From Octopus sinensis (taxonomy: Eukaryota), in assembly GCF_006345805.1 (NCBI RefSeq), contig NW_021837025.1, forward strand, positions 186,001 to 250,000: 64,000 nucleotides of DNA, written 5' to 3'. The notes under the pieces are model-generated. The model saw only the letters and a program-made list of their open reading frames with translations, searched no databases and was not told the DNA's origin. This document shows, one piece after another, positions 3,495 to 56,400 of the stretch. Both the position numbers and the translations under genes were made by a program. How positions within the stretch are numbered: the first letter of the stretch is position 1; the number at the start of each line of letters is the position of its first letter.

Positions 3495-6400
3495 GTGCAG
3501 AGAGAAGTTTATAGTTGTTTTGGTGTGTGCATGTACGTTTCCAAGCAGTTAAGGAAAACGAAACCTACGGGCCTTCCTGCAAATAAAAAGAACTTAAAAA
3601 AGACAGGACCGTCGCCTATGGGACCTCACAATGCCACAAGAGCTAATGGTGTTAAGAAGATCTTGTTGGTGATGCTGCCAAAACTAACTTGCATTCTCTT
3701 TCTGCGATCATCGGAAATGTCAATGGTGTCTCTGAAGGCGAATGGGTGTCTCAGATTGCCCTTGCCACGAAGCAAAGACTTGGAAGGATGCCAAGAGGTG
3801 GTTGGAACCTTGTCCTGGAGAAGTTCAATGAGAAGTACTCGGCAAAGTGCTCCAGTTTATGCCAACTAAAGAGCATGGCTAGACGGAATAACAATGTGCA
3901 AGGGAGATGCGACTCTTCCAGAGTGCAAGATGATGTGGACGTAGAAATTTCCAGTTTCAGAAATTGCCTAGAGGAACTCAAATTCCAAATTGGGAAAGTT
4001 CAGTCTATTCAGAGAGACTCTCGAAAGCCAACTCCAAAGGTGCAACGAAGGATGGTAAAAACTGATATCCTGGCTGGATTAAATTCTGCAATTTATCATA
4101 TTACAAAGATGATCCGCCCCAAGATATTAATCAAATTACCGATATTCTATATGCTGCACAGTGTGCTTATTTGGCCTTAACTACGAAAGCCAGACCACAG
4201 AGCACATGGTTGGAAAACACGGAAAGAAAAATCTCTAAATTAGCAGATGAAATTGACACAGTTCGTTCCTTCTCAAACAAACCTTGCCTCAGGCAGAAAA
4301 GCAAAAGGCAATGGATGTTCTCTGCCGCTACGGATATAAGAAGTCTAAGAAGGGGGAGCTAACCAGAATTGAGACTCTATTGAATGATCTAATTAGAATC
4401 AAAAAGAAACAGATATCTATCCATTCCTCGAGGAAAAATTTCCGGAAAGACAATGCGTGTTTTGAATTAAACCGCAGAAGATTTTATCGAAACTTATCTT
4501 CGAGCAACGAAGCCACCCTGTATGGGTTTGGTGATGGTGAGTGCTTATCATTTTGGGAAGATGTCTGGAGCAAGAAAAATGGGGCCCGTAGTTTATGATT
4601 TTGTGGGTGTGAGGTGTACTGGCGGTGAAACCATGCGACCTCAATTCACAAGTGATTTTATTATGGATATGCTCAAATATGCACCTGACTGGAAGGCATG
4701 CGGATGCGACGGAACGTATAACTTTTTCTTAAAGAAGATGGATTCTTTGCATGGGTTTCTGTGTAAAGAGATAGTCCGAATAATTAATGGAGAGTACACG
4801 CCTGATAGCTGGTTTTACACTGGCGTAACTTACTTGATCCCTAAAAAAAGTGAGTGTGAGACCCCGAAGGACTTACGCCCTATAACGTGTATGCCAACTT
4901 TGTATAAACTTGTCACCAAATGTGTTAATGCCAAACTGGCCGATTTCATCGAGGCATTTGGCTTAATCTCAGATAATCAGCTTGGGACGAGAAAGCAATG
5001 TCAAGGCGCCAAAGAGCAAGCCCTCATTAACCAATGCTTAAATAAGGAGTATGGAAATGGCCTCTATTCTGCTTGGGTCGATGTGAAGAAGGCATTTGAC
5101 TCAGTTGATCACGAGTTCTTGTTCCACGTATTGGATTGCTCTGGAATACCACATTGGATTGTCAGCTTTGTAAAGAACATAGTCAAGAAGTGGACAGTAA
5201 ACTTACATATCGATGGGAAAAGAATTGGGAAAGTAAAGTTAAGCCGGGGAATACTCCAAGGAGATTCATTGTCCCCGCTGCTATTCGTTATGGCGATGGA
5301 TCCCCTAAGCAGGATGCTTAACTCCATGTTTCCCAAACTCGAAATTAGTCGGGAAGATCCCAATATGTTGACATACTCCACCAATCATTTCTTCTTTATT
5401 GACGATCTGAAAATAGTTGCCCTCAAAGAAGATGTGTTAGTCAAAATGATGGAGGCTGTTAATGGATTTTTTGAAAGTGTCGGCCTAGAGATGAATTCCG
5501 AAAAATCAGCATCTAATGTGGAATCTTTATCATGCTGTGAGACTGTCGATGGAATCAACGGATATCGCTACTTGGGTGTACTTGAAGATGGCGGAAGTAA
5601 TGTTCTCAAGAATAAAGTTATGGACTCCATATTGGAGAATGTCAAGAAGAGGATAACTATGTTGTCAAAAACAAACCTGAATGCTGTAAATTTGTTTCGT
5701 GGAATCAATGAATATGCATTATCCCTATATAATTATTATATTGGGCTAATCAATATTGAACCTTACGAATTTGATGAGATTGACCAACAAATACGCCGAT
5801 TACTTACGACTCTCAAGTTACACCTCCAGCCTGCAAATAAGGAGAGGTTGTATTTGGACCGCAAGACCCTTGGAAGAGGACTTGCCTCAATTTCTTTCAA
5901 AAGCGAATTAATGCTCTTCCAGTTTCTTAAAAGTTTGGAAAAACAGTCGACTACCTGTCTGCGGAGGTCGGGTATTCTGCGAGTAATAAAAGGAAAAAAA
6001 TGGCACTTAGCCACAATCGCAGAATTTCTTGTCTCCAAATATGCAGCTGTCGGCAGGGAAAATCTGACCATTGAGTTACTGAAGGACGCACAAAGGAAAC
6101 TCTTGCTTAACCGAATTAACAGTAAATCACTACACTCGGTGATGTTCAAATGTATGGAGGAATCAGATGTCGACATATCTACTTCTTCGCAATGGCTATC
6201 GAAAGGGAACAATGGTCCACGAAGCGAAGCAATGTACTGTCTTTTGCAAGATAGGAATTTGTTCTTTGCATACACGGGATCACTATGCGTCCACTGCAAA
6301 AAAAGCAGACTGTTGACCATCTAGCCACGCGGTGTGGTAGGATGCTAAACAGTGATTATCTCCGAAGACACAACGAAGTGGTAAAGTGTATTCATCTCCA

Positions 6401-7031
6401 CTTGTGTCGAATGTATGGAATAAAACGAAGCAGGAAATTGAAAGGACATTCAGTCGTGTCAACAATGTCGACCCAAAATGTCGAAATCAGAGTTGACACT
6501 TCAATTATGACTGAAACAAAGGTTCAATTCAATAAACCTGATATCTTCGTTTATGACAAGAGGAAAAGAGAAATTCATTTAATCGAAGTGGGAGTTACCT
6601 CGCAAGACCGTTTAAAGCAAGTTGAAGTGGAGAAATTTCACAAATATGACCTGCTTGCAAACGAACTGTCGGTTCTCTATGAAGCAAAAGTGAAGATTAT
6701 TCCAATTGTCTTGACATGGGATGGAGTTGTCTCAAAGTTCTTTAAAAGTCATATGGACAAATTATCCATTGAAGAAGGAACGAGGACATACATCCAGTCG
6801 GTTGTGCTGAAGAGGACTCTAGAGAGTATGCTTATTGAACACAGACATGGGATGAAGGTAGACAACGAGGAGTACGCCTCTGCCGCCAATCAACTTGCGG
6901 AGCTGGCATGTCGTGAGGACACTCAGTTGAACAATTACTTTGACGCAGAAATGGAAAATGATGAGAATTTGTTGCAAACTCTTCTTCCAAGCGAAGAAGA
7001 GAAATCACTGACGATCTGGATTCTTAAATAA
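3495..7031 (+). mobile_element. Near full-length non-LTR retrotransposon with RT, CCHC knuckle and restriction-like endonuclease (R4/NeSL-like), about four frameshifts
   Basis: ORF 4522-6324 has RT motifs (LRPITC, DVKKAFDSV, GILQGDSLSPLLF, FIDD, YRYLG). It is followed by CVHC..H....C, RRHNEVVKCIH, KPDI and IEVG in ORF 6285-7031. Upstream ORFs 3689-4598 form the frameshifted N-terminal part. No introns. Confidence 0.9.
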
Positions 7032-16961: not shown

Positions 16962-17935
16962 ATGATTTTTTTAATTATTTTAGTCCTGATAAAGAACTCA
17001 GATGGGTCATGTAACATTCATAAACAGAAAAAAATATGCATGAAGGAAACATGCTACATATACTATCCCAAGGCATTTTTCAGTCACAAATCAGCACGAG
17101 TTCTTTGTGAATTGTCGGGAAAACAACTTGCCACAGTCGACAACAAACAAGAACTAAGAACTATTAGAAGTAAGTTTTTTCTCTAATCAGGATTCCTCAA
17201 AAATATAAAAACAAACTCAATCGCCATTTGGCTTGACTACACCGACAAAAAAACAGAAGGAGACTTCAGAGACAGTAAAGGATATGTTATGGTTCGCATT
17301 CCACTCAGATTTGCAGAAATATTCAAATTGGCTTAGAAAAGTACTTCCTGCCACAAATAGATATACAAATTGTGCGGCAATGAACCTTCTCTCCTGGAAG
17401 TGGTTTGACTACGGCTGTCACGTCCGACTGCCAGTCTTGTGCAAATATACAAATCCTGCTTTTAAAGCGATATCTCGTCTGACGACTGCAACTCCAACGA
17501 CAATCAAAGTAGAACTCAAAAATGAGAACACAATTCAAATGACAAAGGCGTGTGGAAACCACATTGCCTCTTTGGCCAATGACCACCAACTGTCGACATG
17601 TGCGATCACAAAAAAAGAATTTTTGGGGAATATTAACTACACATTTTCCAAGCCAAATAAATTGGAACAAATCACAATTTACAGTGGTGATAACGAAGAT
17701 GGTATTGACTTGATAAATGCTGGTTTTGCTAGAACAGTCGAGGTTTTTTGATATTTTTGTTGAGGACTCGCAAAATAAAATGCTGCATTGTGCCAAAGTG
17801 GGGTCTGAACGACTGTGGAAAAACTCAAAAAACGTTTTCCGTTGTAATAGAACAATTTTATCAGCCAAGAAAATTATTTTCAAAAGCTATCAGCCGTGGG
17901 ATGCCTTGTCTCTGTGCGAAATAGAGATACAGTAA
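16962..17935 (+). CDS. Secreted C-type lectin domain plus F-type-lectin/discoidin-like domain protein (paralog 1)
   Basis: Signal peptide; CYIY, ARVLC..SGKQLATV, IWLD, YSNW, NCAAM, KWFDYGC..LPVLC; C-terminal LSLCEIEI. Introns of 21, 25 and 31 nt. Confidence 0.8.
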
Positions 17936-18480
17936 CTGTCCTAATTAATTACTAACATTTGGGTTGTCAGTATTAACAAATGCCTATTTTTTATAGTCCA
18001 GGGATTCCAGGGTCACTCAGTATTAACTTTGATGGATTGCACTAACCACAAAATTATTCCTACACTTTTAATTCATCTCTTTTGCAATAAGATGATTTAT
18101 AGACTATTTAATTTTATAAAGTTGGAATGCTTATTTAGAAAAAAAATAAATATTTGAATATATGATAATTAAACTAAAATTAAAGAATTTTTCAGGGGTT
18201 ATAAAAGTAAAATAAAGACATTTAAAATGCTAGTTCGTCACGTGGTTTACTTTTTAAATAAATGGCAGAGTAAATTACTGGGAAAAAGGTCAGTCTTCAC
18301 CGACAACACCGTCATAACAAAACTGGCAAATGGATTTCGTGTGGCCACTGAGCGCCTGGACATTCCCACAGCGACAGTACGACTATTCTTGACGAGGCAG
18401 GTGGGACTATTCCTCGATGCAGGATCCCGCTATGAAAACCAGCAGAATAACGGAGTTGCACACTTCTTGGAACATATGCT

Positions 18481-19852
18481 GGTACTTTTGTCGAAGTGGT
18501 CGCAGTTTTTTTAGAAGATAATTAAAATTAATTAATTTTTTTAGTGAAAAATAGATTATTTAATTTATAACCCTCTATCAATAATTTAAATGGTTATTAA
18601 AATTATTTAAAATTTATTTAACCAATTTAGTCATTTTTAGTACGCGGCATCCAAATTCCAGGACTGTAGAAGGAATTTATGTCTTTTACAATCTGTGCAA
18701 AACATTCCTTATAGTTCTGTATTTGTTTTCGCCACATAAATTCTGAAAAAATAACTAACTAAAAAAACCTGCGAAATAAGATCCCAGATGATGTCTTACA
18801 GCTCCTCTTTGAGCTTTATTCTTGCATTTTGCACTTCCCCACATTCGTTCTACTGTCTGGGTGTGCACTCCCGTCGTTGGATCCACAAAGAATTTTCTGA
18901 ATATATTATATTTCCTTACTTATGGTTAACGGTTTCGTGTGTGTAGCCGTTTTCAACCAATTGATCAGTTGAATACCCTAAATGTTAATCAAATAATGCT
19001 AACCTTTCCAGCAGTCACTATAAATAATGCTTCCCACCTCGACATATCGAATTACTAGACTGAGCAGTGTTTCTCTGCTCCTATCCGCGACTGGTTGCAG
19101 AAAACACTGTTTGGTGGCTCGACAAATACCACCGAAGACCCACTGTTTTGGTAAAACTCTTCCAGAGTTGTTTTTCCGTTTGGAAAACATACTCTCGTCT
19201 ACCTCCACAATCATACCAGGACCACCTGAAATAAACATTAATAATACCAATTTTGCCGTCAGATCTTTTAACAAGTGCGTCCACACAGACTTCACGTAAA
19301 AAACATAGCCCAATCGACATATGTATGTTCACCCCAATTGTATTCGTGATGAAGCCATTTGAAGGTATGCCTATCGTAACTCCATAAGTATATGTAGGCG
19401 ATGACATCCTCAAATGGCAATCTACAATTCTCTAACCAGGTATCTAGAATTATTTGAGAGAAATTATACCTTTTTTAATAGAACATTGGACTCTACAACC
19501 AACTCTTGAGCATTTCCAATTGAGCTTCGGTCCCAAGACTAATTCCATCTGATGTCCCTTCGGACATATGCAGAAAATGCACTGCATCCTCCTTACTTAT
19601 TGGGAGCTGTCGGAATTTGATGTTGCATAAGTCCACAACAGAATTTTCCATGTGACCTATAGTGCCAGTTTATATCAATATTAGGTACATGCTCGCCATA
19701 ATATTAAAAAATAGAAAATAAATTAGTAAAAAATTTAATAATATTTTAAATTATTGATAGAGCGACTTAAATAAAATATAATATATTCCACCTCAAAATT
19801 ATTAGATTTTTAAAAGGCCTAAAAAAACTGCGACCACTTCGACAAAAGTACC
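18481..19852 (-). mobile_element. Merlin (IS1016/IS1595-related) DNA transposon, 1372 bp
   Basis: Perfect 34-bp TIRs GGTACTTTTGTCGAAGTGGTCGCAGTTTTTTTAG; 8-bp TSD CATATGCT at 18473-18480 and 19853-19860. Confidence 0.95.
18627..19651 (-). pseudogene. Merlin DDE transposase with five micro-introns, one internal deletion and one homopolymer frameshift
   Basis: CPKGH..WKC..GC..SIK, REVC, KIGGPGMIVEVDES, QWVFGG, IYSDCWKGY, VNH..FVDP.TGVHTQTVERMW and SYFAEFMWR appear after removing introns at 19444-19469, 19226-19247, 18978-19003, 18897-18919 and 18743-18768. Confidence 0.9.
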
Positions 19853-21259
19853 CATATGCTCTTCAAAGGCTCCACTCGGAGGAGTCAGATGGACTTGGAA
19901 CTGGAAGTCGAGTCCATCGGAGCCCACCTGAACGCCTACACTGGATAACAACCTCCAAGAAGTGGTGTTTGACCATCTGCACGCTGTGGCCTTCCACGAC
20001 TCGTCCTTGGCCTACACAATATTGGGTCCCCCCGAGAACATCCGCTCCATCACTCGAGAACACTTGTTGGACTACGTCGCCCAGCATTACACGGCCGACA
20101 GACTTGTCCTGGCTGCCTCGGGGGGTGTCTTGGTTGTCCTCACACTGCAGGGGTCGACCACCAGCACTTGGTCACATTGGCTCGCACACACTTCGGCCAT
20201 TTGGAGACGTCTGTAAAGAAGCCAAGTCCGCCGTATGTCTTCAGAGGATGCGATGTTGGGGGAGTCCTACATTCTAGATTAAAGTGTGTGACCCAGCATT
20301 GGGAGTTGTCCATGTGGCCATGGCAGTTGAGGGGCCTTCGTGGAGTTCTCCCGACAGTCTTCCTCTGATGGTGGCGAATGCGTTGGTGGGGATGTGGGAC
20401 TCCAGTCAAGTGAGTGGACTCAACATGGCCTCCCGTCTGTCTAAACGAGTCGAGGAGGGGCGTCTGGCCTACTCATTCCAGTCGTTCAACACGTGCTACT
20501 CTGATACGGGACTGTGGTGGGACTTGTCTCTCATGTTAGGGGAGTCTACTTTGTCTCAGACCAGCAAAATGCTTATGAAATGGTCAAGGCAGTCACGGAG
20601 GAGTGGTCTGTATAATTCCTATATTCTTAGGAAGAGGATATGTTCTTCCGTGGGGGACCTCGAAGTACAGAATGCCAAGAACCTACTGAAGGCTACTCTT
20701 CTGTACAACCTGGACGGGTCCACGCCTATATGTGAGGACATTGGGAGGTGTGGTGTCTGATTAATCCCAGACATCTTCTGTTCTACGGGCGGAGAGTGCC
20801 ATTTGCCGAGTTTGACGCGAGGATTAACGACATTGACTCGTCCGCTGTTCGGGATATTTGTTCGCGCTACATTCGATTCAAGGAACCCGTCTTGGCTGCT
20901 GTCGGTTTGTCTCATCTTCTCAGTTTAAAGGACCCACCCAAAATATTCCCGATTATTCCGTTATTCGTCCCACCTTGTCTTGGTGATTTTCAGTTTTTAA
21001 AATTATGTATTATTTCCACTAGTTTTACTGCGATTTCGTGATTATCTGGTTATACTACGAGCACTTTGTACATTTTATTTACAGTCAACTCTCGTTAATC
21101 CGAAAAATTCAAATCGACTTTCCCTTCGGATTATGAAAGATTCTAAAATTTATAAAAAGATTCGAATCCGGACCTCTGAATAATGAGCAAAACTCTTATT
21201 CTAATATCAGAGCAGAAATGTAATTAAGTCAAATAATTATCTTTAATTAATGTTTCTTC

Positions 21260-31732: not shown

Positions 31733-33271
31733 TTAAAACAAGGAGATAGTCTCACTAGCCGAAGGACCGAGACTGATCCACCTGACTAGAAATAAGAAAA
31801 AAGTGTGACCTCTGAGTCTGCTTAGTGTCTCAACACACCTCACATACTCCTGGGCGTTCACAGGCAAGTCCTCAAAGCGGGATATTGCCCGAATGTCACA
31901 ACACCACCCCGGTAGTTTGTGGTAGACAACCTCGACTTTGGCCAACTCCTCACAATTGGCTGAACCAATCACTCCCAAACCAAACCAGGGACATGGTCGA
32001 TAGTGAAGCCATCCAGAAGGTAGTGACTGCCCACGTATAGCTCCTCCAGGTCACTGAGGACATCCAATTTGGTAAGGGCAATACTAAACACACTAAAATA
32101 GAGAAAATACAAACTAAATCCATTCACGATGGCCGAATAGCGCATAACATGACAGTCCAGCCACCCACAACGTCTCACTCGGCCTGTGGTCACTCCAATC
32201 TCCTTCCCCTTCTGCTGCAACATCTCTGCTGCCTCCTAAGCCAGTCACTACTCCAACTACATCACTCAGTTCGGTGGGGAAGGGCCCACTACCAACTCTC
32301 GTCGAATATGCCTTGAACACCCCGATTATGTCACCCACGTGTTTCGGAGGTATCCCCAACCCCGTGAAAACACCACCAACCGCACAGTTCGATGACGTCA
32401 CATTGGGATAGGTCCCTTATATATATAATCGATAATCCACCAAAATCGATATCCAGCATGAATCCGTTGGCCCCTTCGACCAGGATGGATTTGCCTTCCT
32501 CGATTTTGCGATTCAAAAAAATGGAGGTGTCGGTGACTGTGGCTTTGAAGTAGTCCCTGTACTCCTGTCCAGTCACCCAGGGGGGGCCAACCTTGTAGGT
32601 CTCCAGTTCGGCCTCCACGTCGACGGACAGAGAGGGGAACATTGCCTTCTGCACATCCACCAGACTGACAAATCTGCTCGATTAACACACACATTCACTT
32701 TTCTTCAAAAATAGCCCAATCGCCAACCAAATCAGCCAGTTTGAGGACAGTTCGATTGACTTTGGAGGAATAGCAGGGACCAATCCCCTTCTTAGTTGTG
32801 CCTATTCTGTCCTATAAAGACTGGACTGTACTTTTTGTGGTCCCTCAACTGCTCTTGTGCTGCGTCCACGTCCTTAAACATTTGGAATACTTTTATATGA
32901 ATTGTACTCTCACCAATGGGGGCTCTGTTTGAGATTATTAGACGACTTCTCAGGTCTTTGAGTCCTTTCATTTCGGCCTGTTCGATTTCGTGTTTGAGGT
33001 CGGTGAGGGACACGACGACTCCATTTCCTGGGGATGTGACTAGTGGGGTACCGATGACTCCCACGACTGACTGGTGACACACGCCGGAAGGGAGGAGGTG
33101 GAAGAAATATGTTTGTCCACCAAAGACCACGGTATGGCCGGCATTGGAGCCTCCCTGACATCTGCAGACGTAGTCGTAGGTCGGGGAGAGTTGGTCCACC
33201 ATCTTACCCTTCCCCTCGTCTCCCCATTGGCCACCTAATATTATATCCACACGTCCTGGTCTAGAATTCAT
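31733..33271 (-). CDS. ADSS: Adenylosuccinate synthetase, 428 aa, ten introns of 24-27 nt
   Basis: [81 protein letters not shown]. The 1539-nt span minus 252 intron nt gives 429 codons. Confidence 0.97.
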
Positions 33272-39064: not shown

Positions 39065-41230
39065 CAGTGGTTCTCAACGGTGGGCGATTCGCCCCCAGGG
39101 GCGATTTTTTCTGCCAGGGGGGCGATGGCTGATTGCTAATATTTGAAAAATTAAAATCTTATGTTAGAAGTCGATAATCTTTGAAAAAATAAAAATATAT
39201 AATCGAGTCTAATAATATTTATAATATAATGATATTTGGTACTTTTGTCGAAGTGGTCGCAGTTTTTTTAAGAAGATAATTAAAATTAATTAATTTTTTT
39301 AGTGAAAAATAGATATTTAATTTATAACCCTCTATCAATAATTTAAATGGTTATTAAAATTATTTAAAAATTTATTTAACCAATTTAGTCATTTTAGTAC
39401 GCGGCATCCAAATTCCAGGACTGTAGAAGGAATTTATTTTGAAAGGATATCCACATTTTGCAGAAAATGCACTGCATCCTCCTTACTTATTGGGAGCTGT
39501 CGGAATATAAATTAGTAAAAAATTTAATAATATTTTAAATTATTGATAGAGCGACTTAAATAAATATAATATATTCCACCTCAAAAATTATTAGATTTTT
39601 TAAAAGGCCTAAAAAACTGCGACCACTTCGACAAAAGTACCGATATTTTTATTATATTTTATTTAATTTCTAAGCGTGATTTCTAGTTATCTTTATGGGT
39701 CGTGTTCAAAAAAAGTCAGAATGTATAAGATGAATATATTTTTTTGGATTTATTAAAGATCCTCAAGATCCTAATAAACCACTTTGTCTTCAATGTGGTA
39801 CAATTTTTTCGAATGAGGCAATGAAACCGTCTCGTTTGATTGAACATTTAAAGCGAAAACATCATAATTCAATTGGAAAAAAGCCAGACTTTTTTCTAGA
39901 ATTAAAAAAGAATTTTGAAAATAAAAACACCTTACCGTCAATCTTTAATAAAAATATATCTCAAAATGTCTCTGGATTATCTTATTCATATAAAGTTGCA
40001 GAGATAATCGCAAAAACTGGTTGCATTATTATTTTAATTTATAGGTAATGCCCGTTCGATTGCAGAAAATGTCATCCGTCCTTGTTTAAATTTATTTATA
40101 AACGATATCTTACAAAAAGATTCTTCAAATATTATGAAGACTATCCATTAAGCAACGACACTATACGAAGAAGAATTGATGAAATTTCTAATGAAATTGA
40201 ACAATCTTTAATTTTATTTCTCAGAAAACGCAAGTTTTCAGTCCAACATGACGAATCAGTTGTCGTTGATAATCAGTCAATTTTGATGGCATATGTAAGG
40301 TATTACTTTTTATAAATACTTTTTATAAAGATATTTCGATGATGATTCTATTTTGCAAGAAGAGTTATTATTTGCAAAATCTTTGTGATATTATTTGATG
40401 CAATTGTTGATTTTTTAAGATTACAAGAAGAATTTAAATTGTTTGATTCCTGCAAAATTCATAGAAAAAATATTTTTAATTTAAATTGGATTTTAAAAAA
40501 TTAAATGAAGTTTCATTGGCTTTACAAGGAGATTATGTTAATTTAATTGATTGCAAACGAATTATAAATACATTCATTGAAAAAATTCAATTTTACAAAT
40601 TTAATTTAAGTAATAGAAAATTTGGAAAATTCGATTTTTATGACCACACTTTTGATGACAACGATCTGAAAATTTATGAATTTCATTTAGAATCTTTGGA
40701 ACAAGATTTGAAAAAAAGATTTGAAGATTTAATTAATTTAAACTTTTCTGATTGGATGATTAATCCTTGGTTTCCCATTAATTATGATTCTGATGATGAA
40801 TGTCAAGAAGAATTAATAGAACTAAAAAACGCCGAAGAACTGAAATTAAAAATGAAAACCTGACACAATTCTGGGGAGAAAAATCTATAAAAATGAAATT
40901 CCCGAAATTATGGGAAAAAATGATGCCAATAATATTATGTTTTCCTACGTTATACTGCGTAGAGAGAGGATTCAGCACTCTGAATAGTATGATCGGAAAA
41001 AAAAGAAACAAACTAAATATAAAAGAAAGAGGCGACATTAGAATTACACTTACGAAAAGAAGTACAAATTTTGAAAAACTTGTCAATCTTCATCAACCAC
41101 AAGGATCTCATTAAAACTCTTATTTTTTAAATAAAAATTTTTACTAATGAAATAAGGGGGCGATATAAAAATTGGAGGGACGAAAAAAATTCCAAGGGGG
41201 CGATACAAAAATAAAGGTTGAGAACCACTG
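39065..41230 (+). mobile_element. Buster-type hAT transposon with decayed, internally deleted transposase
   Basis: TIR CAGTGGTTCTCAAC at both ends; TSD CTCTAAAA (39057-39064 and 41231-41238); empty site visible in unit 2. Motifs PLCLQC..SNEAMKPSRLIEHLKRKH, LSNDTIRRRI, FSVQHDES, YCVERGFS, DIRITLT. Confidence 0.93.
39238..39641. mobile_element. Merlin deletion derivative (404 bp) nested in the hAT element
   Basis: Same TIRs and subterminal sequence as 18481-19852; flanked by a GATATTT direct repeat (7 bp). Confidence 0.93.
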
Positions 41231-41376
41231 CTCTAAAAGACGCGTGCAAAGGGTCCTTGCTGAAGGGCATATCTTTTTGGATAGAATTGGTTTTTTTAAG
41301 GTCTATAATTTCAACTTTTTAAAATTAATTAGAATTATTTAATAATTTTAAATTTAAAAATTTTTTTATTTGTAAA

Positions 41377-42311
41377 ATGAAGAGGTTGTCAATGGTTGTT
41401 GTAAAATATAATTAGCGGAGTGGACTTGGCCTACACAGTATTCAAAGCAGCCATCAACGAACGTCTAGCATACCCCCACCCAGTCTATATTCTCCACGGC
41501 TTCCAAAGCAGCAGGACTCGCTGGTCCCCGGTGGCCGAGGAACTGTCCAGGAAGGGGATAGAGGTACAACTCTTTATACAAGACAAGACAATCACCGTGG
41601 AAGCACGGAATCACGGAGACAGTCCCTACGTCGACGACCACAGCCACCAAAACATGATTAAGGACGTGGAGAGACTTCGAATAAAGTTGGGTCACTCCAA
41701 AATAAGCATTGTGGGCCACAGCATGGGAGGGATCACCGGAATGTTCTACGCCCTCGAATATGTAGTCCCCCACCCACACCGAAGGGTCCCTCCTTGGCCG
41801 ATTTGGTGGTTGTGGACATCACTTTGGCCCCCCGTGGTGGAGGGAGTCCCCACTTCGAGACCATTTCCCGAATTCGGATACCAGAAGACCCCACAATGAC
41901 CCGGGAACAAGTCGTCGAGCACATTCTAGCCAACACAGAATCACTCATTTCTGTTTTCGTTCTTTCTTATACTCAGAGAAGTGCTCTTGAGAATTTTTTG
42001 AGTGCCAAACTGGTTTTTAAGGAGGGGAAATATCAGTTTACTTTCAATGAAATGCTGGCCAGAAGAGGACACCAAATTGGGAGTATTCCTCCAGGAGTGT
42101 GTCCCAAAAAAGTGCTGTTTGTAGGGGGAGGTGACTCCACGTACATGACGTTGGTCCACTTTTGTCACGTGCAGTTCCGAGGGATTGGAAATGACGCAAA
42201 AAACACTTTCCGAACCAGCAAGTGGTGTACATTGAGAATTGTGGACATTTGGTTTTCGAGGACGATTTTGAGGCATTTACTAAGACTGTGGTCGACTTTT
42301 TGGTTGGGTGA
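41377..42311 (+). CDS. ABHD11: ABHD11-like alpha/beta hydrolase, copy 1
   Basis: ILHGF, VEARNHGDSP, GHSMGG nucleophile elbow, VVVDI, VLFVGGGDS, CGH. Introns of 23-31 nt. Confidence 0.82.
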
Positions 42312-42462
42312 CTAATTTGGTTTATTTGTTGTTTAATAAAGAGTGTTTACTAAGACTGTGGCATTTACTAAGACTGTGGTCGGGCTCTTACTGTGGGGAT
42401 GTGACTCTAAAAGACACGTGCAAAGGGTCCTTGCTGAAGGGCGTACCCTTTTGGATAGAATT

Positions 42463-43115
42463 ATTATTATTTAACCCAAGAATCACCAACAGTTAATTAG
42501 GGTAATTAATTAGGTGATTCCAACAATCCTCAAAATCTTTCTCAGCTTTTCCCGATGTTGGACTCTGGACCCAACGCAAGTGCGGGACGGGCGGGGAGCA
42601 GTTTTTGTGAGGAATTGGAGTGGGGTGATGTGCTTTAGAACCCAAGCGGCGCAGGCATAGCCAATTGTTGGTTCGATGAATTGTTTGTAGAGAGTGCCGA
42701 GAGCCGCGAACGGTGTCTTTAGTCCACCAAAAATCGATTTGATTAGTCCAATCTTTCTTTGACTGGATCCGATGGCCTTCTCTAAATGGGCAGTAAAACA
42801 CATGTGGGTGTCAAAAGTGACCCCCAGAATTTTAGGGTTCTTCGTGAATGGAATCTTTTCGTTGTCCAGAAAAAGATCAACAGTAAGGCTTCCAAGTCTC
42901 TTGTTCGACGTAAATAGGGTAGTGGACGATTTTTCGGGGGAGATGTTCATCCTGTTTTGATATAGCCAAGTTCGAATTTCTAATAAAAGATCTTGTGTTC
43001 TTTTGGAAGCTTTCGAGAGGTCTTGGTCACGTGATTTAATGAGTAGGTCGTCAGCGTAGGCGAGAATGATTGAGTCTTCCATTTCAGGGTTAGGGATGTC
43101 GGATAGGTATAAATT
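42463..43115 (-). mobile_element. 5-prime-truncated LINE (Jockey/I-like) insertion
   Basis: RT end (YADDL, EKSSTTLF, PKILGVTFD), (TAA)n-like tail and 5-bp GAATT duplication (42458-42462 and 43116-43120). Absent from the homologous site in unit 1. Confidence 0.88.
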
Positions 43116-43254
43116 GAATTGGTTTTTTTAAAGGTCTATAATTTCAACTTTTTAAAATTAATTAGAATTTTTTGATTATTTAATTTATTTTAAATTTAAA
43201 AATTATTTTATTTCTAAATAAAATTTCTAAAATGAAAAAAAAACAAAATATAAA

Positions 43255-44187
43255 ATGAATAGGTTGTCAATGGTTGCGGTAAAATATAATTAGCGGAGTC
43301 GACTTGGCCTACACAGTATTCAAAGCAGCCATCAACGAACGTCAAGCATACCCCCACCCAGTCTATATTCTCCACGGATTCCAAAGCAGCAGGACTCGCT
43401 GGTACCCGGTGGCCGAGGAACTGTCCAGGAAGGGCATAGAGGTACAACTCTTTATACAAGACAAGACAATCACCGTGGAAGCACGAAATCACGGAGACAG
43501 TCCCTACGTCGACGACCACAGCCACCAAAACATGATTAAGGACGTGGAGAGACTTCGAATAAAGTTGGGTCACTCCAAAATAAGCATTGTGGGCCACAGC
43601 ATGGGAGGGATCACCGGAATGTTCTACGCCCTCGAATATGTAGTCCCCCACCCACACCGAAGGGTCCCTCCTTGGCCGATTTGGTGGTTGTGGACATCAC
43701 TTTGGCCCCCCGTGTTGGAAGGAGTCCCTACTTCGAGACCATTTCCCAAATTCGGATACCAGAAGACCCCACAATGACCCGGGAACAAGTCGTCGAGCAC
43801 ATTCTAGCCAACACAGAATCACTCATTCCTGTTTTCGTTCTTTTTATACTCAGAGAAGTGCTCTTGAGAATTTTTTGAGTGATACACTGGTTTTTAAGGA
43901 GGGGAAATATCAGTTTACTTTCAATGAAATGCTGATTAGACGGAGACCCCAAATGGAGAGTATTTCTCCAGGAGTGTGTTCCAAAAAAGTGCTGTTTGTG
44001 GGGGGAGGTGACTCCACGTTAATGACGTTGGTCCACTTTTGTCACGTGCAGTTCCGAGGGATTGGAAATGACGAAAAAACACTTTCCGAACCAGCAAGTG
44101 GTGTACATTGAGAAATGTGGACATTTGGTTTTCGAGGACGATTTTGAGGCATTTACTAAAACTGTGGTCGACTTTTTGGTTGGGTGA
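43255..44187 (+). CDS. ABHD11: ABHD11-like alpha/beta hydrolase, copy 2
   Basis: Same exon structure and catalytic motifs as copy 1; one intron is 23 nt versus 24 nt in copy 1. Confidence 0.82.
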
Positions 44188-44257
44188 CCAATTTGGTTTA
44201 TTTGTTGTTTAATAAAGAGTGTTAGTAATAACGAGAGCCGTGATTATATTTACTAAA

Positions 44258-45281
44258 TTATGCCTCGATTTCACAGAAGGATAAATAGTCCCCGTATTGG
44301 TAGCTTTCGAGCATCACTTTGGCGACCATTGAGGTGAGATTGGCACATTTGAACATGTTTTTGGAGTGTGGCCAGAGTCTGTCAGAACCGACTTTGGCGC
44401 AGTGATGTTTGATGTTGTTGGTGGAGAGAGCAAAGACGTCGAAATACCTCGACATTTCTGCAAATAAGTGAAGGAGTGTTACCAGGCATGTTTATCCCAC
44501 TGTGGATAGTAATTTGCTGTATAGTCTTGGGAACCCCCAATGTGTAGTTAATCTTGCCATAAAAATTCCCCTGAGTCACCACACACGTAGCCATGTTTAA
44601 GTCATGTCCATATGTCGTGTAACTGTAGTTTCCATACATGCTTGTCATTTGTATTGTGTTCGGCGGTGGTGTCGTCGTCGGCGTAGTAGTCGTGGTTGTT
44701 GTAGTGGTAGTAGGGGTCGTAGTAGTAGTAGGGGTGGTAGTAGTAGGAGTGGTAGTAGGGGTGGTCGGGGGTGAGTAGTTTGGGTCGACGTATTTGCAGA
44801 CAGCGGGGAGTCTCGCAAAGCAAATGTAGTCGAACCACTTGCCTGTAAAAATGTCCATTCCAGCACAGTTTTCGAACTGATTTCTGCCACTTGGTTCATT
44901 TTGATACCAATTAGAATATGTCTGAGTATTAATATATAAATAGACCAATCCATTCCCATTGCTGTCCTTGAATATCCCCTCATTGTTGATATCATCGTAG
45001 TCCAACCAAACTGCCACAGACCTGGTCTTTATGTTTCGAAGGATGGCTAAAATAGTCCCCAAACCCTCACATATCAGCGAGTCCTTTTCTGCCGAACTTC
45101 CAACAGTCACCAACTCCCTCCCGACTGTTGTGCAGAGAGTCCTCGCCCCCGAGTGGGTGACGTAGTCCTTCGCGTAGATTTGATAACAAAATCCATTCGC
45201 ACACGAAGTTTGGGGGGTGGAAATTATGCAGATTCCACAGACCTTCCTGGCCAGTAATACAAACAGCACAAATTCGAACAT
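44258..45281 (-). CDS. Secreted C-type lectin, Thr/Pro mucin-like linker and F-type-lectin-like domain (paralog 2)
   Basis: Signal peptide; CYQI, ARTLC, VWLD, YSNW..NEPSG, ENCAGM, KWFDYIC..LPAVC; (PTTT)n linker at about 44660-44775; LSFCEIE. Three introns at the same positions as paralog 1. Confidence 0.85.
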
Positions 45282-45589
45282 CACTCTCCGCCTGGCAGAG
45301 GGTATTTAAGGCTGCGGATATTGGTCTTCCAGATGGCATTGGGAGTATAAATAAACTCATTAATTGACAATTAATATTATTCTTGTTGTGCTTGTTTGAC
45401 AGACAACACATGTCTATTACTTTGGAATGTCACTTTTATTATTTTTGGTAACAGGGATATTTAGAAAAGTCATGTGATTGGGGGATAATTGATTATATAT
45501 ATTTAATTATATACAAAATGTGAATGAAATAATATAATAATTTAACAATAAAATATACACTTTTAAAAGTCCGGTTATCGTTATTTGTC

Positions 45590-53946: not shown

Positions 53947-56400
53947 CAGTGGTTCTCAACCTTTTTTAAGTCAGCACCCTTTTTTGACACAATTTTAAAG
54001 CTTAAAAATTTTAGCGCCCCCTTATTATCTAATTTATTTTTTCAATCATAGATTTATTTGTCAATATTTTCAACAATTGGCCGGAATTATCAGTTCCCTT
54101 ACTGGTTGAGCTGGTAACGTAGCTCTATTGCACAATGTGCTTCCTCGCGAATTTCTGTCTGTTATATGACTCATTTATATGTAATACTGCTTTTCAGCAC
54201 CCTGCACGTCACAAGACGGCATGGACTGGTCGAAGGATGAATAGCACAGGAGAATCAATCTATATATACAATCAAATTGATTATATTCTCTGTCGGATGA
54301 ACGACAAAAGCTTTTTGTTCGACTCACGCTCTTATGGAGGATCTGATCACAAAATCACGCTTTTGGAAATTGAAATGTCCAGGGCTCTTAGCACAATAAA
54401 CAGGACAAAGCTGATTGAGGTGTTACAACGCTTTTTGGATGAAGGTTCGGTTAGAGTAATTAGATTGATTCTCGCCAACACTGAACTTGAAGTAAGAATA
54501 AGAGAACACAAATCGATGAGTTTTGAAACGACACTGGGAACGCCTCAGGGAGACTTATTATCTCCATTGCTATTCGTAATATACTTGGAGTCGGCCTTAC
54601 AAGATCTAAGACCATATTACAAAGGTGAACCGAGGAAAAAATTTATGACGTGGACGTGATACCCGAAGACAAATCCTCATTAATAGAACTTCTCGAACTT
54701 GCACCGGAGCAATTAAGAAAATGGTTCCTTTATGTAAACAAAGAAAAAACTAATCTTGTGGAAGTAACAAGATAAAATGACAAAATCAATGAAAGATGGC
54801 GCAATGTACGACAACTTGGCTCTCTTCTGGGAGACAGTGAGGATATTGCAAGGATAAAAATGCTGGCATCTGCAGAAATGCACAAACTCTGGAAGAATGG
54901 CTATCATATGGATCAGCGAATGTTCAACTCCGGATAAGGCTTTACAATAGCTTTGTGAGACCCGTGTTAATGTATAACTTCTCCACTTTGGGTTGCACAA
55001 ATACGGAACTGACACGTCTTAACAGTTTCTACAGAGGACAATTGAGAAAACTGTTCAAAATGGAGTGGCCCTATAGAATATCTTGGGAGTCGTTATACAG
55101 AAAGTGTTCTACAAGGCCACTTTCCATTGACATTGCTGAATCCCGCTGGAAGCTATTTGGACACAGACTGCGAATGGACCACTCCGCACCCGCAAATACG
55201 GTGATGGAGGATTAATTCCAATGCGACAAACCACGGTTCCGGGGACGCCTTATTATTTTTTTCAGAATTAAAAAAAATTAAACATTTTAATGACTACTTG
55301 TGCCTGAAGAGAATTTGTTAGTTTCTTTATGTCAGCTGCACTATTTGACAGATTCAGTCTCAAATCTTTTCTATTCACAATTTGTTATTTATCTGTTGAA
55401 CAAGCAATAATATTGTCAAAGAATATTTCGTGTCTCCACAAATATTTTTCAACAGTTTTAGAGATTGTTAGTTCTCTTGTTTCGACTTTAAGATGTTCAA
55501 AAAAGTAGAAATTCTTCTTGAATTACATCATTTTGATTAATAAAACGTATGTAAATTAATAAAAATGCAACACTATCGGTAAATGTCGATTCATTAATTT
55601 GAATCGAAAATTTTGTTGTTCTTAAAAATGCACATAAAGTTTCTTCGATATCAGATACCATTTCATCAATTCTGGAAGAGACTGAACTATTGCTCAAAAA
55701 AATTGATGAAATTATTTGTTCAGAATCGAAATCAACCATTAAATTGGTATTATATTAAAGACTTCATGAGGTTTTCCTGATTTCTCTATCTATTGTGATA
55801 TTTTGTATGATACTAATAGGCCTTTTTCAAGTATCTTCGAATTTTTGTGAATATTTGATTAATCATAAATTTTCATAATTATATTTTAAATTAGAAAAGT
55901 AATTAATATCCGCATCAGGTTTCTCAGGATGACAAATCTTGAAATGATTTAGGATTCTTGAGAGCTTCATTCCTTCATTTGTAAAGACCTTTTTACACAT
56001 GAGACACATAGGAAATGAATTGTTATGGTCTTGGAATATCACTCCAAACTTTAGGTGTTCATTCGAATATATACGTCGATTATTTTTTATCAGACATCTA
56101 TTGTATCGTTAATATCTCTGTCGCAAGATGTAAACAAAATGTTGACATTTCGCTCAGGCCGGCCACACTTTTTTATAGAAAGATCAAAACAGAAAAAGAA
56201 CATGTTACCAAAGAACTAACTAATCCAAACGAAGTCATGTGTCTCTTCTTCTCCATTTTGCTCACCTAATTTTTGTTGTATGACTGTTGAAGATATCCGG
56301 TTCCGCAGTGATAACACGTCACTTGTTAATCCGGGTTGCATATTGGATGAAGGAACCTTCATGAAACCAAAAAAGTCAGACATCTATAAAATATTAAATG
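53947..56400 (-). mobile_element. Decayed Buster-type hAT element; one TIR seen, other end lost
   Basis: CAGTGGTTCTCAACC at 53947 preceded by ATTTAGAC. Minus-strand transposase remnants LSNSSVSSRIDEM..KFSIQINES..LLIYIRF..QEEFLL. Confidence 0.7.
54135..55250 (+). mobile_element. RTE-clade LINE remnant nested in the hAT element
   Basis: NQIDYIL, SDH, GTPQGDLLSPLLFVIYLE, QLGSLLG, RPVLMY, SRWKLFGH.LRM. Confidence 0.82.

Follow-up and report, generated by a model that had tools for sequence, protein, structure and literature searches.

A PMPCB-type beta-MPP gene carrying a Merlin insertion and a nearby coding deletion, probably a freshly inactivated copy from a likely dicyemid

The window, a 64-kb stretch of DNA that we analysed as a whole and that contains no Ns, carries on its forward strand a gene of the beta-MPP (PMPCB) type. 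Exon 1 (18227-18376) opens with an ATG at 18227 and encodes a short basic presequence and the start of the M16 domain. It is followed by an intron of 24 nt with GT..AG borders (18377-18400). Exon 2 is found in two parts separated by a DNA transposon. The part before the insertion (18401-18480) reads GVAHFLEHM, in which the HxxEH zinc-binding and catalytic motif is present as HFLEH (18461-18475), and the part after it (19861-19942) is 70-80% identical to orthologues. The remainder of the gene continues in a shifted frame at 19944-20986, with exons at 19944-20124, 20151-20254, 20278-20516, 20540-20605, 20631-20747, 20771-20904 and 20931-20986, the last of which ends in a stop codon at 20984-20986. 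Downstream of 19944 the introns measure 26, 23, 23, 25, 23 and 26 nt (the 25-nt intron, at 20606-20630, is the fifth of the gene), and all seven introns fall within 23-26 nt.

We compared these introns with the PMPCB intron maps of an annelid (Owenia), amphioxus (Branchiostoma), a mollusc (Gigantopelta) and a sponge (Dysidea). All seven were found at ancestral metazoan PMPCB positions and phases, namely (with a caret for the intron) TAT^VG in phase 0, AAG^G in phase 1, GSE^I in phase 0, GL^W in phase 2, E^W (EEW^K) in phase 2, IG^R in phase 2 and AV^G in phase 1. The first of these, TAT^VG, has the same position and phase in Owenia, Gigantopelta and Dysidea. Because every intron is ancestral in both respects, the locus is the native, intron-bearing beta-MPP gene, and a processed pseudogene or retrocopy is ruled out. 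At least four further ancestral PMPCB introns have been lost from the window gene (FK^G, ENI^K and ARI-D/E^AV among them), and the transposon inserted two codons before the former FK^G site.

Within the M16 family, the window gene shares its fold and family with UQCRC1 (core 1), the metazoan paralogue of beta-MPP, and solved core-1 chains match it strongly (305 bits). However, UQCRC1 representatives carry YF[VL]EH where the window gene has HFLEH, and the 298-residue piece that lies beyond the frameshift (the C piece), which is 51-54% identical to animal PMPCB, reaches 332 bits with the representative of the PMPCB cluster and 273 bits with that of core 1 (YFVEH). A phylogenetic tree placed the gene in the metazoan clade (93/89) and outside the core-1 pair, in a clade whose base is poorly resolved, and on a long branch (0.86, compared with 0.1-0.4 in the tree). 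Aligned with 103 animal PMPCB orthologues, the gene spans 171 highly conserved columns, of which it keeps 139 and differs in 32; this fits a fast-evolving lineage and would by itself be no sign of relaxed selection. The gene is thus beta-MPP-like, not core-1-like. A preliminary description made from the DNA letters had called it beta-MPP, and the HFLEH motif, the difference in bit scores and a tree that does not group it with core 1 all uphold that identification.

The transposon occupies 18481-19852. It is 1372 bp long and ends in terminal inverted repeats of 34 nt (18481-18514 and 19819-19852) that are 100% complementary. A perfect 8-bp target duplication, CATATGCT, flanks it on the left (18473-18480) and on the right (19853-19860), starting with the codon for the second His in HFLEH. 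The empty site before insertion would read …GAACATATGCTCTTCAAAGG…. The reverse strand of the element carries a transposase gene (18627-19587) with six exons and five introns of 26, 22, 26, 23 and 26 nt, whose product matches the IS1595/ISXO2-type DDE transposases (PF12762, E=1.6e-19; NCBIfam NF033547, 79.8 bits with a cut-off of 75). By its inverted ends, 8-bp duplication and transposase, the insert qualifies as a Merlin element. Merlin elements are reportedly, as Feschotte set out in 2004, the eukaryotic relatives of bacterial IS1016/IS1595. With that superfamily the window element shares an IS1595-type DDE transposase, inverted repeats that start with GG, the 8-bp duplication and the existence of short derivatives, but it differs in its five transposase introns of 22-26 nt, which are in the style of the host genes, and in one extra base that breaks the transposase frame. 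The coding bases of the transposase come to 838, one too many, at a run of six A (T6 on the coding strand) at 19298-19303. Because the IS1595 profile match runs on into the downstream frame, from DALVKRS…, that stretch is taken as coding and not as an intron; the extra base may be real or a sequencing error.

The element has a relative in the window. A 25-nt piece of the Merlin end occurs four times in the window, where 0.00 occurrences are expected by chance, and these are the ends of two elements. The second element is a non-autonomous derivative of 404 bp (39238-39641), which has the same ends and a deleted interior and lies in intergenic AT-rich DNA. Its 25-nt ends are identical to those of the full element, it is flanked by a repeat GATATTT (7/8 bases), and over about 390 bases the two differ by eight one-base indels and one substitution, an unusual ratio. 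A second copy with identical ends indicates that the family is young, and it is now active in this genome or was active very recently. The host-style transposase introns suggest that it has also been long resident there.

The second lesion lies 82 bases beyond the Merlin duplication. At 19943 a single extra G stands between AYT, where the exon-2 reading ends, and DNNLQEVVF, which is in a different frame, and 152 coding bases are missing. When the flanks were joined in silico, the exon-2 frame ran into the G and then a stop, and the frame of the C piece opened at 19944. Measured against solved structures, the piece before the junction (the N piece) ends at residue 90 of the core-1 chain and the C piece starts at residue 142, so exactly 51 residues are missing, and the alignment with the 103 animal PMPCB orthologues identifies them as the segment SREQ…ILREMQEV. 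Of the 202 columns with a conservation of 95% or more, 31 fall in this segment. Its loss is also visible in the domain matches: Peptidase_M16_C (PF05193) is complete (profile positions 1-181 of 181, E=4.4e-39), whereas the N piece matches Peptidase_M16 (PF00675) only over profile positions 1-68 of 149, compared with 1-148 in an intact orthologue. The zinc site of beta-MPP is HxxEHx76E, mutating any of the ligands abolishes activity, and MPP-beta is essential (PMC8835746). Counted on the alignment, the distal ligand, a Glu 76 residues past the second His (the E of LREMQ), falls inside the gap.

The breakpoints speak to how the deletion arose. It comprises 152 coding bases (51 codons minus one base) together with up to two ancestral intron positions or micro-introns. 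The 5' breakpoint is inside an ancestral exon, the 3' breakpoint is 5 bases beyond the ancestral REMQ^EV intron, and the ancestral position PK^AV lies within the deleted segment. With both breakpoints in coding sequence, the deletion appears to be a plain genomic event. Exon skipping and cDNA-mediated conversion were considered and rejected, as the breakpoints are off the intron positions and the PK^AV position is inside the gap; a transposon excision footprint at 19943 was rejected as well, there being neither a duplicated target nor a remnant of an end. The preliminary description had read both lesions in essentially this form, with a Merlin and its 8-bp duplication right after HFLEH, and with AYT joined through an extra G at 19943 and about 51 residues missing, the third zinc ligand among them. 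The perfect ends, the two copies of the duplication, the in silico join, the core-1 structures and the orthologue alignment bear out each of these points.

We asked whether the copy could still work. As it stands, the spliced beta-MPP frame ends at a stop inside the transposon end. Removing the Merlin in frame by splicing would need contrived introns of more than 1.3 kb (for example from a GC donor at 18478 to an acceptor at 19848), and we rejected this since introns in this DNA measure about 25 nt and the frames would still be shifted. At 19943, the two frames cannot be linked by any GT/GC..AG intron of 15-70 nt. A tblastn search of the window with seven orthologues found nothing credible for the missing 51-codon segment (the best match, at E=0.03, is a stop-containing AT-rich stretch), as the preliminary description had also reported, and no second M16 gene was found in the 64 kb. 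Because the deletion removes the codon for the distal Glu and shifts the frame, the window copy cannot yield an active peptidase even without the transposon. The gene therefore resembles PMPCB/Mas1 (M16B) in its N-terminal M16 region with HFLEH, its full M16_C domain and its ancestral introns, but differs from it by the transposon, the 51-residue deletion that includes the distal Glu and the frameshift, which leave no active enzyme possible.

An intact counterpart was sought in protein collections. Word-indexed searches with the C piece, its first 61 residues and the N piece found no protein of the source species, and a source-species PMPCB was likewise absent from a full HMMER scan of 1.84 billion representatives and from an exact look-up of nine window ORFs. 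The best protein matches show 51-54% identity along the full C piece and no more than 81% along short fragments; the source species is simply missing from the collections searched. We infer a working counterpart from the essentiality of the gene and not from observation.

The state of the rest of the gene constrains the time of inactivation. In 1206 coding bases and seven introns there is no other stop, frameshift or splice-site loss. In a simple neutral simulation, the probability of staying this clean was 0.16-0.06 at 1% divergence and 0.03-0.004 at 2%, dropping below 0.05 beyond about 1.5-2% neutral divergence. On this model, neutral decay since inactivation would be under about 2%, of the same order as the allelic variation that has been reported in Dicyema japonicum. 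Because the remaining gene is without decay, both lesions would be no older than ordinary allelic variation. It had been claimed that the other exons and micro-introns are intact and stop-free and that the disabling is very recent. Both claims hold up, the first on the undamaged bases and introns just described and the second on two independent lesions with no other damage, the perfect transposon ends and duplication, and the simulation.

The indels between the two Merlin elements raised the suspicion of a generally poor assembly. This suspicion found no support elsewhere in the window. A neighbouring gene on the reverse strand, AdSS (adenylosuccinate synthetase, 31939-33271), is contiguous and appears intact, each change of frame being bridged by one of four out-of-frame introns of exactly 25 nt (an E. 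coli PurA sequence served as the probe, and as a probe only). An alpha/beta-hydrolase gene is present as a tandem duplicate (41373-42347 and 43251-44223; 96.3% identical over 975 bases), and this pair differs by 34 substitutions as against 2 gaps. The window does not, on these comparisons, appear to be generally error-ridden.

The size of the introns bears on the origin of the DNA. Animal introns of 22-26 nt are found only in myxobolid myxozoans and in D. japonicum (PMC13644364). The D. japonicum assembly has 36.7% GC, 48.9% repeats and 5,012 genes, in a strongly reduced genome (PMC6736024), and the GC and repeat content of the window are consistent with those values. Myxozoan proteins were not found among the matches. 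The source of the window DNA is likely a dicyemid, judging by these features; the guess to that effect in the preliminary description is plausible on intron size, GC, repeats and the lack of a myxozoan relative, but stays unproven. The published D. japonicum assembly was built from short reads of pooled animals with 1.24% heterozygosity, was gap-closed, and was reduced to one haplotype with HaploMerger (PMC6736024), which relies only on sequence similarity when it chooses between haplotypes and makes no use of read depth (PMC8178825). By analogy with that assembly, the window was presumably assembled in the same manner. Neither M16 peptidases nor Merlin are mentioned in the supplement to the D. 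japonicum genome paper (PMC6736024).

We consider it probable, at about 0.62, that this is the native PMPCB-type locus of an animal, probably a dicyemid, whose introns are ultra-short, that it has been freshly inactivated, and that an intact counterpart lies outside the window, most likely on the other haplotype. A Merlin of a recently active family would have entered exon 2, duplicating 8 bp from the second His codon of HFLEH, and a genomic deletion 82 bases downstream would have taken 152 coding bases, the distal Glu codon included, and shifted the frame. Because the lesions seem no older than allelic variation, the function would be supplied by an intact counterpart elsewhere. That counterpart would be the other haplotype, and the window copy a recessive null in a heterozygous, largely clonally propagating population. 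A null allele can reach a reference of this kind because the published D. japonicum assembly was pooled, heterozygous and merged to one haplotype; the present one would have entered through the pooling of animals, the 1.24% heterozygosity and the similarity-based reduction of haplotypes. The locus is like the transposon-insertion null alleles and young unitary pseudogenes of heterozygous drafts in its perfect duplication and ends, its lack of secondary decay and its normal neighbourhood, but it differs from them in the independent deletion 82 bases away and in affecting a normally indispensable gene. For a simple polymorphism, it is somewhat unexpected that one haplotype should carry two independent lesions within 90 bases of each other, and this counts against the null-haplotype reading.

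A single cause for both lesions would be more economical, given that they are only 82 bases apart. The Merlin insertion could be real and probably heterozygous, while the loss of 152 bases and the stray G could stem from faulty assembly or gap closing where contigs broke around the insertion. The way in which the D. japonicum assembly was made (short reads from pooled animals, gap closing, merging of haplotypes) would allow such an error, and the breakpoints match neither intron positions nor any repeat. However, the window has no Ns and its coding sequence is sound elsewhere, and although a misjoin with clean sequence on both sides is possible, nothing in the sequence points to one; we regard this explanation as unlikely. 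No likelier is a dead PMPCB paralogue with a working gene elsewhere in the genome, which ranks below a null haplotype as a reading. A dead paralogue predicts the same lack of decay as an allele does, and the recent tandem duplication of the hydrolase gene shows that duplication occurs in this DNA. Yet the 64 kb contain no second M16 gene, a copy that keeps its ancestral introns, its own start and its flanks would need a large segmental duplication, and the genome, with 5,012 genes, is reported to be strongly reduced.

The remaining readings treat this as the only dicyemid beta-MPP locus, so that either the presequence peptidase has just been lost and another M16 protein has replaced it, or a germline-type form was sequenced. 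Even with both versions counted, we find this very improbable. A true loss of the sole beta-MPP, with presequence cleavage either relaxed or carried out by a different M16 protein (for example a core-1 paralogue whose active site is retained), has precedents in the extremely reduced parasites Encephalitozoon and Entamoeba, which lost MPP, and in metazoans the degenerate motif of core 1 still has some activity (PMC3673636). The long branch and the 32 of 171 conserved columns that differ could also be read in its favour. But the precedents are confined to parasites with mitosomes (PMC3673636), and the mitochondria of dicyemids still respire and have genes of their own (PMC6543705); dicyemids are known to evolve fast, with which the long branch agrees, and a gene otherwise free of decay was under selection until very recently. 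We give such a loss hardly any credence. Dicyemids are reported to rearrange DNA in the soma, to eliminate chromatin and to contain small DNA circles by the thousand (PMC6543705, citing Noto 2003 and Awata 2006), and on that account the locus could be present in the window in a germline-type form, with rearrangement or repair taking place in the nuclei of somatic cells. The most that excision could do, however, is take out the Merlin, and it could never restore 51 codons that are found nowhere in the window. Nothing points, moreover, to a general system in which genes are interrupted, because this gene is the only interrupted one in the window, the other Merlin copy is intergenic and AdSS, the one neighbour checked in detail, is uninterrupted. 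Somatic repair is the least credible of the readings considered. Among the options offered by the preliminary description, a dead allele or paralogue and a rare haplotype fit best, and a relaxed need for MPP and a germline form repaired in the soma gained no positive support.

Most likely an intact counterpart exists, in which case the locus is a textbook young null allele and probably ordinary. It would then illustrate that reference sequences can carry broken alleles of essential genes, which calls for caution in claims of gene loss from reduced parasite genomes. Should there be no intact copy, respiring mitochondria in an animal that lacks a canonical beta-MPP would be unprecedented. A difference between soma and germline at this locus, if true, would provide the first sequence-level handle on chromatin elimination in dicyemids.

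Several other loci were seen in the window. A retroelement at 4522-7031 has an open frame of 600 residues with an RVT_1 match (E=7e-31), followed by an ORF of 248 residues. Reverse-transcriptase fragments lie between the two alpha/beta-hydrolase copies (42510-43082, reverse strand) and at 54135-54659. Tandem repeats with a period of 174 bp and about 91% identity are found at 695-1220, inside a Lys/Glu-rich ORF (659-1632). On the reverse strand, a C-type lectin gene (44382-45284; Lectin_C, E=6e-10) has a long Thr/Pro-rich linker, and an ORF at 17233-17751 has motifs similar to those of the lectin gene and no Pfam match. These loci bring to mind the genes for lectins and endocytosis that have been discussed in D. 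japonicum.
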